Below, one piece after another: positions 18,012-23,884 of a DNA stretch of 64,000 bases. The DNA is taken from sequence record NC_031010.1; one strand, written 5' to 3'. Position numbers and translations under genes: made by a program. The notes below the pieces were generated by a model, which saw only the letters and a program-made list of their open reading frames with translations, was not told the origin of the DNA and ran no database searches. Within the stretch, counting starts at the first letter, position 1. Every line of letters begins with the position of its first letter.

Positions 18012-18665
18012 ATGGCTAGAGATTTACGAACCTATAGTAGCTATCGACAGATGCTGAATAGGTGCTTAAACACAAACAACCACAACTATTATTTGTACGG
18101 CGGGCGTGGGATTAAGATCTGCGACCGTTGGTTAGAATCCTATTCCAACTTTTTGGAGGACATGGGGATTAGACCTGAAGGAATGACTCTAGATAGAAAG
18201 GACAATGATGGCGATTACTGCTTAGATAACTGCAAGTGGTCTACCCATGTCGAACAGTGTTATAATCGGGCCTCTTCGCACTGGCTGATTTTCCACTATG
18301 ACAATCACCATCAATATACCGATGCGGAACTGATAAACTATTCAGCTTTGCCGGAACTGAACGGTTTGATAGAAGAACTACAGGCCACATACCCCCTTTC
18401 TCGAATCAAAGGTGGCGTTAAGTTCATCAGCAATTTGAGTGGGGTTGCCACCTTTGTTTTACTTAAAGAGTTATCAGACAAAGACCTGCCTATTGGTACT
18501 AAAGTCAATCAGTTGACGTTGGTGAAGCCGATTGAAGTAGGGGTAAAAAACCTTATTGTTTATGAATGGCGATGTGATTGCGGTAACACCGTTACTGGCA
18601 AGTGTCATCATGTGGTCAATGGCGATCGGAAGTCCTGCGGGTGCCATCGTCAAACCCGGCTTTAA
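18012..18665 (+). CDS. HNH homing endonuclease-like protein
   Basis: Y..ML.RC.N.....Y..YGGRGIKIC.RW...F..DMG.RP.G.TLDR.DNDG.Y...NCKW motif; C-terminal WRCDCGN...KSCGC module. Confidence 0.8.
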   Translation: MARDLRTYSSYRQMLNRCLNTNNHNYYLYGGRGIKICDRWLESYSNFLEDMGIRPEGMTLDRKDNDGDYCLDNCKWSTHVEQCYNRASSHWLIFHYDNHHQYTDAELINYSALPELNGLIEELQATYPLSRIKGGVKFISNLSGVATFVLLKELSDKDLPIGTKVNQLTLVKPIEVGVKNLIVYEWRCDCGNTVTGKCHHVVNGDRKSCGCHRQTRL

Positions 18666-18723: not shown

Positions 18724-19029
18724 ATGAAAGTTGAAGTGCATGCAACCAAGAACGGTATTGAAGTCGTGTGTCCGACGTCCCGCAAGAACGTCTTTGTGGC
18801 CATCGACAGCGGCTGGACAAGCTGGTACAAAGAACTCCAGTCAGAGCTGAATTGTGCTAAGACGCACCACGCGGTTTTTATGCTCCCCGAACGCACCCAG
18901 CTGCGGGTTATGGTCTATATTGCCAAAGACCGGATACCGCGGGTTTCGACTACCCTCCTCGCCAACGCAGTCGGTATGTTTCTGGCCGAGCACGGCGACG
19001 AGAATACCCGACTTACCATTATCGAGTAA
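18724..19029 (+). CDS. Hypothetical protein
   Basis: AAGGA RBS, ATG 18724; 101 aa. Confidence 0.65.
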   Translation: MKVEVHATKNGIEVVCPTSRKNVFVAIDSGWTSWYKELQSELNCAKTHHAVFMLPERTQLRVMVYIAKDRIPRVSTTLLANAVGMFLAEHGDENTRLTIIE

Positions 19030-19033
19030 AAGA

Positions 19034-19070
19034 CAGGCCGCCGTAGGGTGGCCTTCTTTTTTTTATTTTT
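19034..19070 (+). terminator. Intrinsic terminator
   Basis: AGGCCGCC-GTA-GGGTGGCCT hairpin plus a long T-tract. Confidence 0.7.
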
Positions 19071-19092
19071 ACAAGTGAGGCCTCTGTTATGT
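19067..19092 (+). promoter_or_regulatory. Putative promoter, class B
   Basis: TTTTAC 19067-19072, N16, ATGT 19089-19092. Confidence 0.55.
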
Positions 19093-19125
19093 CGAAATCC
19101 CCCATTTTAAGTAACGGACGTTATA

Positions 19126-19527
19126 ATGAACAAGATCGAATTCAAAGACGGCGAAGGTGCCTTTATTAACGGCGTATTGATTCCGAACTCCCACAACGGG
19201 CATTGGAAAGACGCAGCATTTGCTCTGGCCACCGGTTTCAACATGACCATCACCAACGAGCTGTCTCTGAACAATTCGCTGGATGCCATCACCAAGGGCG
19301 GTTGTTTTCGTATCAACGCAGAAGCGGCGGGTGCGCTGTTACAGAACGCGGACTTCACCAGCGGCATGTACGCCTACCGTCAGTTGGGTATTCTGCGTAC
19401 CCTGTCTGGTAAGCACATCGGGCAAGGGCATCCGCCATCCACTTTCAAGCCGAACTCCATTGTGCTGGTCAGCTACTTCAGTGACCGCGAAGAGATGTTG
19501 GGCTTCAATGTTATCTGGGGTATCTGA
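19126..19527 (+). CDS. Hypothetical protein
   Basis: 133-aa ORF heading the thyA operon; phage-like codon usage. Confidence 0.65.
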   Translation: MNKIEFKDGEGAFINGVLIPNSHNGHWKDAAFALATGFNMTITNELSLNNSLDAITKGGCFRINAEAAGALLQNADFTSGMYAYRQLGILRTLSGKHIGQGHPPSTFKPNSIVLVSYFSDREEMLGFNVIWGI

Positions 19528-20102
19528 TGACTGACTTTAATCCCGTAGCCGTTGTTCGCCAAGTCGAACAGTGGAACGACCGTGCCTTGGTTTACCAGTT
19601 CGGTAACATCCGTCAACAAATCACCAAATACTACCGCATGCTGGGCATGGTTGCGGAAGGTGTGCAGAAGATGGACAGTCTGTTGGTCTCAGCGGGCGTA
19701 GGACAGGCTGTAACGACGTTAATCGGTGTCCTCGGGTTCTACTCCCGTAAAACGGACATCCCCGTAGAAGCCGTTACAGAGGTCGTGCTGCACTCTGCCC
19801 TGAATAACATTCCGCCTGGCATGAAATACGGCAACGACTATAACACGATTCTGTTTGAGCACAACAAGGCTATCACCCAGCTGTTCGATGCTCTGCTGGC
19901 CAACGAGCAGGAGAAGCAGCGTCAGGACATCGTGTTCTACTCCAAGCTTGCAGAGGCACTGGCGTTGTTGCTGTCGATTGCCACGGCCAAAGATATCGTC
20001 GTCACCCGCAGTATTCTGAATGCGGTGAATAAACTCGAAGCGACTGAGGGCGTGATGAACGAACTCGGTCAGTTTGTCAAAACAGTGACAGGAAACAAAT
20101 AA
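19527..20102 (+). CDS. MazG-like protein lacking the catalytic acidic residues (paralog of the MazG domain in 21996-23378)
   Basis: Ungapped alignment to the neighbouring MazG domain, with EExGE replaced by RMLGM and DGVGD by AGVGQ. Confidence 0.6.
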
Positions 20103-21220
20103 TGCGCCAGTATCTCCAACTGATGGAATCCGTCCTCTCATTCGGTCATGAAAAGAAAGACCGTACCGGCACCGGCACGCGCTCCTTGTTCGGGGCCCAG
20201 ATGCGGTTTGACCTGACCGAAGGCTTCCCACTGGTGACCACGAAAAAGGTTCACCTCCGTTCTATCATTCACGAGCTGCTGTGGTTCCTGAAAGGGGACA
20301 CCAACATCAGTTACCTGAACGATAACGGGGTCACTATCTGGGACGAATGGGCGCGGGATGAAACTCGTTCGGTTCCGTGCGTGTACACGGTGGAAGAACG
20401 TGCAGCCATTCTGCGCCAGCGCAGTAGCATCGATGGGAAAACCACCGATTGGTACAACGAATGGGAAGCGGCGTTGTTGGAAGGCGATGACGAAGAAGAG
20501 AAGATGGTGGTGCTCGATTCGCAGAATGTTCCGCGTGAAGGTTTCCGTGACGTCACCACCTCTGGCGAACTCGGCCCAGTATACGGAAAACAGTGGCGGG
20601 ATTGGGTTGGTGCAGATGGTCGGCATCATGACCAAATCACCAAAGTCATCGACCAGCTGCGTAACGATCCGGATAACCGCCGCATTATTGTCAGCGCATG
20701 GAATGTCGGTGAGTTGGACCAGATGGCGTTAGCACCGTGTCATTCTTTCTTCCAGTTCTATACGCGCGAGCTGACGCTGTACGAGCGTGCTCTTGCTGCA
20801 AAAGAGAAAGGCACCGAAGACTACTACCTGAATCTCAATGAGAAACATCAGGAGCAGCTGCATTACGAGTTCGATGAATTGGCTGTTCCTCGTCGCGGTC
20901 TATCGTGTCAGTTGTATCAGCGCAGCGCCGATGTCTTCTTAGGCGTGCCGTTTAACATCGCCTCGTATGCTTTACTGACTGAGATGGTTGCTCAGCAGGT
21001 CAACATGGTGGCCGAGGAGTTCGTCTGGACAGGCGGTGATACACATCTGTATTCCAACCATCTGGAGCAGGCCCGTCTGCAGTTAACTCGTGACCCGCAC
21101 CCATTACCGCGTCTGAAATTCAAACGTAAGCCCGAGTCTATCTTCGACTACCAGTTCGAAGACTTTGAAATCGAAGGCTACGTTTCCCACGACGCCATCA
21201 AAGCACCGGTTGCCATTTAA
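20102..21220 (+). CDS. thyA: Thymidylate synthase
   Basis: [25 protein letters not shown], catalytic [26 protein letters not shown]-terminal PVAI. Confidence 0.97.
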
Positions 21221-21276
21221 AAACGTGATTCCGCAGTTCTATGCTGAAACACACAACTGAAAAGAAGGAAAGCGAG

Positions 21277-21468
21277 ATGTCCCAGAAAGAAAGCTCCATG
21301 CAGTCTACCATCAACCAGCACAACCAGATGGTTGCGGATGACGCCGACGACAGTTTCGACCTGCCGGGTCTGGACGACGCCGAAGCGCGTGTGGCTGAGA
21401 AGCGCGATGCCGAAGAAAATCAGGAAGACATTTCTGATGAAGCGGATTGCGAAGGCTGCAAAATCTAA
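21277..21468 (+). CDS. Small acidic protein with a C-terminal CxxC (ADCEGCKI)
   Basis: AAGGA RBS; very Asp/Glu-rich; followed by a terminator. Confidence 0.6.
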   Translation: MSQKESSMQSTINQHNQMVADDADDSFDLPGLDDAEARVAEKRDAEENQEDISDEADCEGCKI

Positions 21469-21471
21469 GTA

Positions 21472-21508
21472 GTACCTGCCCCGCCACGTGCGGGGTATTC
21501 TTTTATTA
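21472..21508 (+). terminator. Intrinsic terminator
   Basis: TACC..CCCGC-CACGT-GCGGGGTA hairpin plus T-tract. Confidence 0.65.
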
Positions 21509-21523
21509 ACCCAAGGAACTAAG

Positions 21524-21982
21524 ATGTCTACGACTCGAATCAATTACGATTTAGTAGTGCAAGAACTTACCCGGAACATGTACCCATTAGATCACACCGT
21601 TGTACACGCTTGCAACATGTCTCTTGCGCAGCGTCTGCTCGCTTTTCGCACCGTGCGTTTCGGCGCAGGACGCCAGCAAGGTATCACGGAGTGGTTGGCA
21701 GAAGATTTCGTTCGTAATGAAGGGCACTCTCTGGTACTCCAAACGAGTAACGAACTGCGGGCCGATTTACGTTACCGTATCCTCGCGAAATCTAATGAGG
21801 CAAAGGTCGATTCCGGGATGTTCCTTGCGAGGGATATTCCTGACTATGTCAAACACTTGAAGTTTAACCGTGTGTATATCGACGACGCGGGCCATTACTT
21901 CAACCTGTTCAAATTGAGCAAGGTGTACGAACATCTTGCAACCTGTACAACCGACGACGTTATCATCTATCATCTTAATTAA
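21524..21982 (+). CDS. Small degenerate P-loop NTPase-like protein
   Basis: TVRFGAGRQQGIT (terminase-type Walker A-like) and RVYIDDA (Walker B-like). Confidence 0.45.
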   Translation: MSTTRINYDLVVQELTRNMYPLDHTVVHACNMSLAQRLLAFRTVRFGAGRQQGITEWLAEDFVRNEGHSLVLQTSNELRADLRYRILAKSNEAKVDSGMFLARDIPDYVKHLKFNRVYIDDAGHYFNLFKLSKVYEHLATCTTDDVIIYHLN

Positions 21983-21995
21983 GGGCTGACTTCAA

Positions 21996-23378
21996 ATGGG
22001 CGAGCAATTTACTATCCAAGTGCCATACGTTGCACTGTTCAATCCGAACAACTTCCTGATGGAAGTCAACGATGCGCTGAAGGTGCTGAAGGAGGAAGGG
22101 CGTGCGAACATCCTGTTCCGCACTATCCGTTCACTCGACCGCAATGTCGAAACCGGCACATGGTACATCGAAGGTGACTTGGCACCGGAAGAGGGCGACG
22201 TCGAAGAAGATCCGGAGATGCAGTTTAACCGCATGCGTGACCTCGATAACCACGACTGCGAACTGAACCTGCCGCTGCTGCACGTTCTGCTGGCCGCACC
22301 GTTGTACGATGCACAGAAAAACATCGTGACCCATCCGCGTTATATCCGCCTGTTCCAAATTCCTGAGCTGATTCAGAAAATCAAAGGCTGGTCACAAGCG
22401 CGCGGCATTCTGGACAACGGCATCTGGTACACCCAAGCCACCAAGATGTACGAAGAAGACGGTGAGATTGCCCCGGGTGTGGCCAAGTCCAAACGTAACA
22501 TGGTTATCGACGGCGTCGGTGACATGATCGTGGTAATGGTTAACCTGCTGGAGCTGACGAACTTTAATTCCGAGGCCATTACGGCGATGGTTGCTTCTGT
22601 CCGTAAAGAAGCACCGCCTATGGGTAATGCACACTACCTGTATCACAAGCTGCGTATGTCGAACACGCTGTCCGTCGACTACATGTGGGAAGTCGCTGGC
22701 GTGGATTCGCCGAAGCAGTTGACCCGTACGATGTTTGATGAAACACAAATCAAATACGCTATCGGTCATCTGGGCGACTGTTTGATCTTTGCCAATGCGC
22801 TGGCTAATGCGTACGAGTTCACGCTGGAGCAAGCCCTGTCCATGGCGTGGGATGAAATCAAAGACCGCACCGGTTTTCTGAACGCAGACGGTGTGTTTGT
22901 GAAGGAGTCTGATATGTCTGAAAACGATCGTATCCAACGTGCCCTGAAAGACACCGAAAAAGCCGGTAACTTTGACGGTGATAATAGCCCTGCGCGCAAA
23001 CTGGAAGTTGACCTTTCAGGCGAACACGCAACCACGACCGCCCGTGGAATGACCTCAGCCTTCACGGCGGTTGATGAACTGGGAACTGTCGAGCCACCAA
23101 CCAAAGAGATCTCTTACTTCCCGGTTGTGCCGACTACTGAACAACTGAGCGCAGCGACCGATGCTATTCATGCAACACTCGGCGGTGACTCAGTACAGTT
23201 TGTCCGTGTAGGCACCTACTACGGTGGTGACACGTTCTACCCTCGTCCGCACATCCTGTTTGAATTCACACTCGACGGTCGTCCGGGAACGCGCCATCAG
23301 CAGGTTGAAGAAGGCGAGTATTGGGAATTTGCTGACGATGCGGCGTCTTACATCGTGCGTGAGCCTATCAGCGACTAA
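21996..23378 (+). CDS. Multidomain protein with a central MazG-like NTP pyrophosphohydrolase domain
   Basis: W...RG, TKMYEEDGEIA, VIDGVGD and AWDEIKDRTG.L..DGVFVKE motifs. Confidence 0.8.
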   Translation: MGEQFTIQVPYVALFNPNNFLMEVNDALKVLKEEGRANILFRTIRSLDRNVETGTWYIEGDLAPEEGDVEEDPEMQFNRMRDLDNHDCELNLPLLHVLLAAPLYDAQKNIVTHPRYIRLFQIPELIQKIKGWSQARGILDNGIWYTQATKMYEEDGEIAPGVAKSKRNMVIDGVGDMIVVMVNLLELTNFNSEAITAMVASVRKEAPPMGNAHYLYHKLRMSNTLSVDYMWEVAGVDSPKQLTRTMFDETQIKYAIGHLGDCLIFANALANAYEFTLEQALSMAWDEIKDRTGFLNADGVFVKESDMSENDRIQRALKDTEKAGNFDGDNSPARKLEVDLSGEHATTTARGMTSAFTAVDELGTVEPPTKEISYFPVVPTTEQLSAATDAIHATLGGDSVQFVRVGTYYGGDTFYPRPHILFEFTLDGRPGTRHQQVEEGEYWEFADDAASYIVREPISD

Positions 23379-23386
23379 GGACAGTC

Positions 23387-23884
23387 ATGAACCGTATCGA
23401 AGTGATTGATGTCATCCCCGATGACAATGAAATCGAAATCAACGGTAAGGTGATTGGCTCAGTGAACGACCGCCACGCGATGTTGTGGCGGTACTTCTCG
23501 AATGCCGAACACATCTTCATTATCGAGGATGTGAGCCTGACGTTTGATGAAACACCGACCGAGCAGATTACCATTCCGCTTGAAGAATCGATGCTGCGTA
23601 AACTCATTGCGTGTGCGGACTACCGTAACGAAGACAATGACCCGAACAGTTTGTGGGATGAAATTGACCCCTCACTGCCAAAGGAAATTGGTCTGCGGGC
23701 GGTCGAAACCATTAAGCTCGATTCCATGTGGTTGGACTGCAACAGCAAGATTCCGGTGTGTACGCCCATTCTGGTTATCCACGTCGACCGTGACGAAGTA
23801 GACATGCCGGTGCTTTGCATCAGCTACCTGATTCTACGCCACCCTGACGATCGTGAAATAGGAGACAACATTGACCGAACTTAA
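23387..23884 (+). CDS. Hypothetical acidic protein
   Basis: AAGGA RBS; 165 aa. Confidence 0.65.
   Translation: MNRIEVIDVIPDDNEIEINGKVIGSVNDRHAMLWRYFSNAEHIFIIEDVSLTFDETPTEQITIPLEESMLRKLIACADYRNEDNDPNSLWDEIDPSLPKEIGLRAVETIKLDSMWLDCNSKIPVCTPILVIHVDRDEVDMPVLCISYLILRHPDDREIGDNIDRT

Follow-up and report, generated by a model that had tools for sequence, protein, structure and literature searches.

Relatives of gp257 among the All-Alpha Pyrophosphohydrolases

The all-alpha nucleoside triphosphate (NTP) pyrophosphohydrolases, which include MazG, HisE, and the dimeric dUTPases, are the closest described relatives of the gene considered here, gp257 of Erwinia phage vB_EamM_Kwan (NC_031010, Wellingtonvirus, 246 kb), a jumbo phage that infects the fire-blight bacterium. 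The gene lies in a stretch of 64,000 nucleotides of this genome, referred to here as the window, to which the nucleotide positions refer, and its product is annotated as a "hypothetical protein". Positions 19000–23500 of the window match the Kwan genome with 100% identity. MazG-type proteins function as dimers or tetramers, and in Escherichia coli MazG only one of the two MazG domains is needed for activity. The dUTPases produce dUMP, which is the substrate of thymidylate synthase. The phage MazG-like pyrophosphatase Atd1 depletes (p)ppGpp and protects against TIR-STING toxicity (preprint 10.1101/2022.06.09.495361).

The Kwan genome contains exactly two MazG-like loci. The gp261 gene encodes an intact MazG-like protein, and gp257 encodes a protein of the same superfamily from which the catalytic acids have been lost. 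It is very probable that gp257 is a conserved non-catalytic protein of the MazG/dUTPase fold. The features on which this view is based are as follows.

19527..20102, + strand: gp257, 191 residues, acid-less MazG/dimeric-dUTPase-fold protein (phrog_10269)
19635..19649, + strand: gp257 codons 37–41, R-M-L-G-M in place of the canonical metal-binding motif E-E-x-G-E (column table)
19692..19706, + strand: gp257 codons 56–60, A-G-V-G-Q in place of canonical D-x-x-G-D (alignment and column table)
20025..20045, + strand: gp257 codons 167–173, V-N-K-L-E-A-T in place of canonical W-x-E-I-K-D-R, the second half-site (alignment and column table)
21996..23378, + strand: gp261, 460 residues, MazG-like NTP pyrophosphohydrolase with intact catalytic motifs (phrog_7855), annotated as mazG nucleotide pyrophosphohydrolase

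The phage long MazG-like NTP pyrophosphohydrolases (PF03819; phrog_715 and phrog_7855), gp261 among them, have the same domain of ~170–190 residues and the same helix order as gp257. W16, G26, Q31, K34, G40, K48, and G59, together with G175, G181, and F183 of the C-terminal G-x(5)-G-x-F hairpin, are common to the acid-less family and the canonical proteins. However, gp257 lacks E-E-x-G-E, D-x-x-G-D, and W-x-E-I-K-D-R, has invariants of its own, and belongs to a separate clade on a long stem. The dimeric all-alpha dUTPases (Campylobacter jejuni 1w2y, Leishmania 2yay, and staphylococcal phage 5myd) are the best whole-domain structural matches of both models described below (best Z 10.5–11.1, with 146–159 residues aligned), and the gp257 gene adjoins a thymidylate synthase gene. 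Nevertheless, the identity of gp257 to these enzymes is 6–10%, their metal-binding acids are absent from it, and it has no match to PF08761. Atd1 is likewise phage-encoded and a member of the superfamily, but it works by catalysis with conserved motifs that gp257 lacks, and it was identified among anti-defence genes, whereas gp257 lies in a conserved nucleotide-metabolism block. E. coli MazG (3cra, 3crc) is reached by the profile of canonical proteins and is the top, but non-significant, Foldseek match in the PDB for the model of a gp257 ortholog. Its two domains are fused and both carry acidic motifs, whereas the acid-less copy in Kwan is a separate gene in another predicted transcription unit.

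Homology to gp261 and Loss of the Catalytic Site

BLASTP aligned residues 9–185 of gp257 with residues 125–303 of gp261 (E 3e-7, 21% identity over 185 residues). The homology of gp257 to the MazG domain of gp261, proposed earlier from the DNA letters alone (the sequence-only reading), is thus borne out. The alignment had also been described as gap-free; this is correct for the two blocks quoted at that time (gp257 16–60 and 141–185 against gp261 132–176 and 259–303), which form the flanks, but not for the middle, where there are 14 gap positions. The relationship is also seen between profiles. In hhalign, the acid-less family (profile A3) and 19 canonical proteins (profile A4) matched with a probability of 99.1% and E 1e-18 over 163 columns, and A4 in turn reached E. 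coli MazG 3crc (5e-8), Sulfolobus MazG, and PRA-PH in the PDB. Among the PHROGs, gp257 matched phrog_10269 at 1.6e-34 (residues 8–186 against profile positions 10–182 of 299), and it matched the mazG PHROGs 7855 and 715 more weakly, in the range of 1e-5 to 1e-6 (about 2e-6 and 2e-5). The rest of the phrog_10269 profile, beyond position 182, corresponds to the C-terminal domain of longer orthologs. A protein language-model look-up placed gp257 beside viral MazG-like clusters. There was no Pfam match to gp257 at E ≤ 1, including PF03819 (MazG), NCBIfam was also empty, and searches of PDB sequences with gp257, gp261, and the family profile returned nothing relevant. PF03819 was matched by none of the 21 family members, as opposed to 16 of the 19 canonical relatives.

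The residues at the catalytic positions were tabulated by column for 21 members of the acid-less family and 35 canonical proteins.

E153 (gp261) to R37 (gp257): Arg in 19 of 21 family members; Glu or Ser in canonical proteins
E154 (gp261) to M38 (gp257): acidic in no family member
E157 (gp261) to M41 (gp257): Glu or Asp in 10 of 21 family members, none of them in the Kwan clade
D172 (gp261) to A56 (gp257): A, S, or K in the family; near-invariant Asp in canonical proteins
D176 (gp261) to Q60 (gp257): N, R, Q, or K in the family, with Glu in two; Asp in 35 of 35 canonical proteins
K289 (gp261) to E171 (gp257): Lys in 30 of 35 canonical proteins
R291 (gp261) to T173 (gp257): Arg in 35 of 35 canonical proteins

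All five metal-binding acids of the first block are therefore missing from gp257, as the sequence-only reading had stated, and the full five-acid set is present in none of the aligned family members. The second-half motif W-x-E-I-K-D-R of gp261 (285–291) is likewise lost. The first-half consensus of the family is Q-Q-x-x-K-x-Y-R-x-L-G...E-G-V-Q-K...G-x-G, as compared with the canonical Q-x-x-K-x-x-E-E-x-G-E...K...D-x-x-G-D. Residues Y23, R37, E44, Q47, L52, R161, N165, and E179 are conserved in the acid-less family only. In the second half, a stretch without conservation stands in place of the canonical W-x-E-I-K-D-R-x-G, and before it are a new invariant Arg and Asn; these residues, R161 and N165, lie in the same helix, one to two turns upstream of the lost motif. 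The earlier statement that the MazG scaffold has been kept without its catalytic residues is supported by the shared scaffold residues, the profile match, and the fold models. Conventional pyrophosphohydrolysis by gp257 is very unlikely because the Mg-chelating and phosphate-holding residues of its canonical relatives are gone.

The paralog gp261 has been correctly called an intact MazG. Residues E153, E154, E157, D172, D176, K289, D290, and R291 are all present and do not vary within its own family. It also keeps each residue shared without exception by that family and the 35 canonical relatives. The match of gp261 to the PHROG mazG profile phrog_7855 is at 7e-118, and its Pfam MazG score is below the threshold (15.2 vs 22 bits). 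The protein consists of an N-terminal domain (residues 1–120), a catalytic domain (121–309; 22356–22922), and a clade-specific C-terminal extension (310–460; 22923–23375). The extension (~150 residues, 22923–23378 with the end of the gene) is found in the Kwan/Wellington clade and lacking in other gp261-type proteins, and it matches no known family. Environmental relatives carry replacements or indels within it, around 22966–23060.

Fold of the Acid-Less Protein

Two independent models were examined. The AlphaFold2 model of gp257, built from a shallow alignment, has a predicted local distance difference test score (pLDDT) of 74.6 and a predicted template modelling score of 0.76; it is all-helical with a short C-terminal hairpin. 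In an exhaustive VIA structural search with this model, the dimeric dUTPases came first (5myd, Z 11.1 with 147 residues aligned; 1w2y, Z 10.7; 2yay, Z 9.5), and the top 40 rows also held MazG (1vmg, 7yh5, 2yxh) and PRA-PH (1yvw, 6j22). The second model, of a 303-residue Asesino-type ortholog, has a pLDDT of 90.5. Its VIA order was 1w2y (Z 10.5 over 156 residues), 5myd (8.5), and 2yay (7.9), followed by MazG and PRA-PH. YpjD was also among the top VIA matches of the models.

Foldseek, which had been suggested earlier as a check, gave no significant match in the PDB for gp257 or the ortholog model. Against the viral models of BFVD, the ortholog model was linked to Kwan gp257 (E 9e-9, template modelling score 0.80, root-mean-square deviation 2.7) and to the 460-residue gp261 ortholog of phage Wellington (E 6e-7). 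Several phage proteins labelled "NTP-PPase-like" were also matched, with E values from 1e-4 to 6e-7. Sequence, profile, and structure agree, and the fold of gp257 can thus be assigned to the all-alpha NTP pyrophosphohydrolases of the long single-chain type, most like the dimeric dUTPases. By fold and homology, gp257 belongs to the MazG/HisE/dimeric dUTPase superfamily. It would not belong to the MazG enzymes, as judged from the metal-binding acids, the second half-site motif, and PF03819.

Distribution and Domain Architecture of the Family

A search of 1.84 billion representative proteins was made with a profile built from gp257 and its orthologs. The true acid-less family formed ~20 clusters with E values from 1e-21 to 1e-114. 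After a clear gap, canonical MazG-like proteins followed, including the gp261 type, at 2.5e-8 to 8e-4. In tblastn searches, the acid-less family was found in 53 phage records, all of them large SPN3US-type phages of Erwinia, Salmonella, Escherichia, or Proteus. Kwan, SPN3US, and Asesino each have two MazG-like loci, one acid-less and one of the gp261 type. The canonical long MazG-like domain is present in 199 phage records, many of them from small phages, and in many small phages it stands alone. In Cronobacter phage CR5 (L025, 96616–111200), thyA and a MazG of the gp261 type (42% identical) are arranged similarly, and the acid-less paralog was not found anywhere in the CR5 genome, which makes CR5 a natural counterpart for functional comparisons.

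Most acid-less orthologs are 286–328 residues long and have a second domain of ~100 residues after a disordered linker. The Kwan clade lacks this domain, as do at least three more short forms at scattered places in the tree. In the L023 contig, it is encoded by a separate gene directly downstream (5e-20; L023:1036-1347). The C-terminal domain is a detachable module: most phages have it fused, one contig has it as a separate gene, and several clades lack it. The MazG-like domain is thus the constant part of the family. In the ortholog model, the C-terminal domain (residues 196–293) consists of two long helices, a hairpin, and a helix; its best structural match is Tctex/DYNLT1 at Z 6.4, which is too weak to name the domain. 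A "Rosetta-stone" transfer of this domain onto the long Kwan gp261 was considered and rejected: BLASTP similarity was confined to the MazG domains, and the family HMM (hidden Markov model) A3, with the C-terminal domain included, gave a single match on gp261. The ortholog C-terminal domain was not found in the Kwan genome in a search run without a positive control.

The acid-less family was previously only an unnamed PHROG. In the literature searched, no description was found of SPN3US gp228, Asesino gp250, or an inactive MazG/dUTPase paralog in phages. It is a new pseudo-enzyme branch of a known superfamily and not a new kind of system.

Selection and Evolutionary History

The gp257 gene is under strong purifying selection. 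Its ratio of nonsynonymous to synonymous substitution rates (dN/dS) is 0.022 in comparison with two relatives on viral contigs (dS 0.10 and 0.67) and 0.18 in comparison with a 60%-identical relative, for which dS is saturated. Between Kwan and the more distant of the two contig relatives (L006), amino-acid identity is 97% for gp257, 88% for gp256, 86% for ThyA, and 73% for gp261. A maximum-likelihood tree was built from 49 domains. In it, a single clade (100/100) on a long stem unites the acid-less proteins, and the branching within this clade goes as deep as within the gp261 clade (99/99). No sister group of the acid-less family could be recognised in this tree, which speaks neither for nor against a recent duplication of gp261 within the lineage. 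A single supported clade, deep divergence, and purifying selection together indicate that the acids were lost once, long ago, and that the protein has been maintained since. Three outcomes that would have spoken against the sequence-only reading were set beforehand, namely a fold unlike MazG, a dN/dS near 1, and sporadic presence; these were looked at, and none was observed.

The possibility that gp257 is a decaying duplicate without function can be regarded as effectively refuted. The loss of the catalytic residues and the lack of a Pfam match are what decay would produce; the low dN/dS, a frame that is intact in every relative seen, and a single ancient clade that has its own invariants and is better conserved than its neighbours are not.

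Coupling to thyA and Genomic Context

The other features of the locus are as follows.

19035..19054, + strand: terminator-like hairpin with T-run, likely the upstream boundary of the gp256-gp257-thyA-gp259 unit (consensus scan only; by itself no functional evidence)
19126..19527, + strand: gp256, 133 residues, function unknown (phrog_9744); its stop overlaps the gp257 start (TGATG)
20102..21220, + strand: thyA (gp258), 372 residues, intact thymidylate synthase with lineage-specific insertions (Pfam PF00303 9e-114; NCBIfam equivalog above cut-off)
21241..21468, + strand: gp259, 75 residues, small acidic protein, last gene before the next hairpin (weak phrog_10239 match)
21477..21497, + strand: terminator-like hairpin with T-run between the thyA unit and the gp260-gp261 unit (consensus scan only)

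The two paralogs had been described as flanking thyA. This applies to gp257, whose stop overlaps the thyA start (TAATG); gp261 lies 776 nucleotides downstream, with two genes between. The predicted unit gp256-gp257-thyA-gp259 is bracketed by the hairpins, and gp260-gp263, gp261 included, form the next block; these boundaries are pattern matches and no proof. The overlaps suggest that gp257 is made from the ThyA message and is translationally coupled both to thyA and to gp256. In Asesino, SPN3US, and contigs L008, L019, L020/L021, and L022, the acid-less gene is likewise followed directly by thyA; in L023, the gene of the split C-terminal domain comes between the two. The gp256 gene is found 5' of the acid-less gene in Asesino, SPN3US, and L023 (33% identity in the last). 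No Pfam family better than E = 1, no usable ESM Atlas match, and no literature lead were found for gp256. In metatranscriptome contigs, two of three libraries (X15 and X16) cover gp257 at 95–99% identity, which was not counted as evidence of transcription because contigs are no proof of it.

DHFR is encoded elsewhere in the Kwan genome. The genome has no match to the trimeric dUTPase PF00692, the dimeric dUTPase PF08761, or the dCMP deaminase PF00383. PF08761 also had no match in the whole genomes of SPN3US and Asesino, although the control genomes rang only weakly, so that the test is not very sensitive. Given the lack of dUTPase and dCMP deaminase Pfam matches, gp261 would be the sole visible phage candidate for dUMP supply or for the sanitation of deoxynucleoside triphosphates. 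Asesino, which carries an acid-less ortholog, is a nucleus-forming phage (PMC11724907), and the nucleotide-metabolism enzymes studied in nucleus-forming phages are cytoplasmic (PMC10299810).

Kwan ThyA has a unique insertion of ~69 residues after W-D-E-W-A (20354–20560, codons about 85–153). Instead of this, the ThyA proteins of Wellington, two related contigs, and SPN3US have an insertion of ~40 residues after Q-W-R-x-W. Kwan and Wellington ThyA are 85% identical by the codon-alignment script (93% over aligned columns by MAFFT), as compared with 99% for the flanking genes; the value is low because the insertions differ. The catalytic residues of ThyA are intact despite the insertion. Further upstream, an HNH endonuclease gene, gp254 (18012–18665; phrog_8790, 9e-103), lies within the conserved block. 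At the same position, Asesino and SPN3US have no counterpart, so gp254 is probably a mobile insertion.

Proposed Role and Rival Explanations

The former active-site groove appears to be the best-conserved part of gp257 and to have been rebuilt, not eroded. Conservation in the family is strongest for residues that lie at canonical active-site positions or one to two helical turns from them, including 161 and 165 in the last helix. In the first helix, positions 31, 34, 37, 41, 44/45, and 48 would fall on one face, judging from their i, i+3/4, and i+7 spacing and their alignment to active-site positions. W16, Q31, K34, and K48, putatively on the base and phosphate side, would be retained in this groove. 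The first Glu would be reversed in charge to the conserved R37, placing an Arg where the metal was, and the new invariant polar residues E44, Q47, R161, N165, and E179 would complete the rebuilt site. An anionic ligand, probably a pyrimidine nucleotide, could then be bound without hydrolysis. The change from Glu to Arg37 is as expected if such a ligand is bound directly, with no metal ions. The rebuilt groove speaks for binding because a merely structural dead subunit would be more likely to let the groove drift.

Taken together, the rebuilt groove, the tight coupling to thyA, and the dUTPase-like fold, three features absent from the sequence-only reading, suggest that gp257 is a non-hydrolytic, nucleotide- or ligand-binding accessory or regulator of the thymidylate (ThyA) branch. 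Of the roles considered, this is rated the most likely, but the assignment is tentative. The explanation as a whole, a non-hydrolytic binding or regulatory gp257 that works with the thymidylate branch, is the best that can be offered and falls just short of being probable. The protein may also be a metal-free nucleotide receptor made from the dUTPase/MazG fold, which either controls ThyA in response to pyrimidine nucleotide levels or sequesters dUTP or a signalling nucleotide; this is conceivable, although rather unlikely. Several observations weigh against a role in the thymidylate branch or against parts of its basis. Gene order is conserved over the whole block, which makes adjacency to thyA weak evidence that is suggestive only. 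CR5 runs thyA and a gp261-type MazG without the acid-less protein, so the pathway as such does not require this function. Roughly half of the family has Glu or Asp at the third acid position, and there may be residual or altered catalysis in some members. In the VIA rows for gp257, unrelated helical proteins, mostly membrane transporters, are interspersed at similar Z values. A Z of 8–11 can be reached by chance among helical bundles; consequently, the fold call leans on the sequence and profile evidence and the BFVD matches.

The rival explanations start from the same observations. As gp257 and gp261 are homologous with the same long domain layout, and as Kwan, SPN3US, and Asesino have one of each, gp257 could be a dead subunit that pairs with gp261 and tunes or redirects its activity, with the two domains of unequal catalytic importance in E. 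coli MazG as a precedent. Such a hetero-oligomeric regulator is unlikely. The predicted transcription units of the two genes are different, and their rates are decoupled, as seen from the identities of 97% and 73% to the same relative. The gp261-type enzyme does without the paralog in CR5, and the canonical long domain does so in many small phages; moreover, the conserved residues of gp257 are at old active-site positions and form no obvious interface. New polar residues that are strictly conserved at the former active site would also be expected of a new catalytic site. Thus, gp257 might still be an enzyme whose remodelled groove (Arg37, Glu44, Gln47, Arg161, and Asn165) catalyses another reaction, perhaps without a metal, on a nucleotide or other phosphorylated substrate, and the acidic residue at the third acid position in 10 of 21 members would fit with this. 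We consider it quite unlikely, since the residues that define catalysis in canonical superfamily members are missing, the Kwan clade has no acid at any of the five positions, and searches of Pfam, NCBIfam, and PDB sequences turned up no family known to have such a site.

A fold that binds nucleotides but does not hydrolyse them would also meet the needs of a sponge for nucleotide immune signals, and gp257 could alternatively serve as a decoy for systems that sense phage MazG- or dUTPase-type proteins. This anti-defence explanation draws on Atd1, a phage MazG-like protein that counters TIR-STING toxicity, and on PDB entry 5myd, which is among the best structural matches and whose title refers to dimeric phage dUTPases in signalling. 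The background on (p)ppGpp depletion and TIR-STING given with the sequence-only reading is indeed found in the Atd1 preprint (10.1101/2022.06.09.495361), but the mechanism described there depends on catalysis. In addition, gp257, coupled to thyA, belongs to a conserved core block for nucleotide metabolism and not to a variable anti-defence island, it evolves very slowly (dN/dS 0.02), unlike typical arms-race genes, and it has no similarity to known sponge families. An anti-defence role is therefore very unlikely.

Significance for SPN3US-Like Phages

A conserved jumbo-phage gene of unknown function can now be placed as a pseudo-enzyme of the MazG/dimeric-dUTPase fold that is coupled to thyA and has been kept through the diversification of SPN3US-like phages. 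Genetic systems are available for its relatives, with amber mutants in SPN3US (PMC5105663) and a system for Asesino (PMC11724907), and the role of the acid-less protein is thus directly testable. If gp257 binds its ligand without cleaving it, the fold of a house-cleaning enzyme would have been recycled as a sensor or regulator. The protein would then provide a handle on the supply of dUMP and dTTP in phages that have no dUTPase or dCMP deaminase Pfam matches. Should it prove to be a nucleotide receptor, it would be a pseudo-enzyme of a new kind that regulates the supply of DNA precursors in phages.

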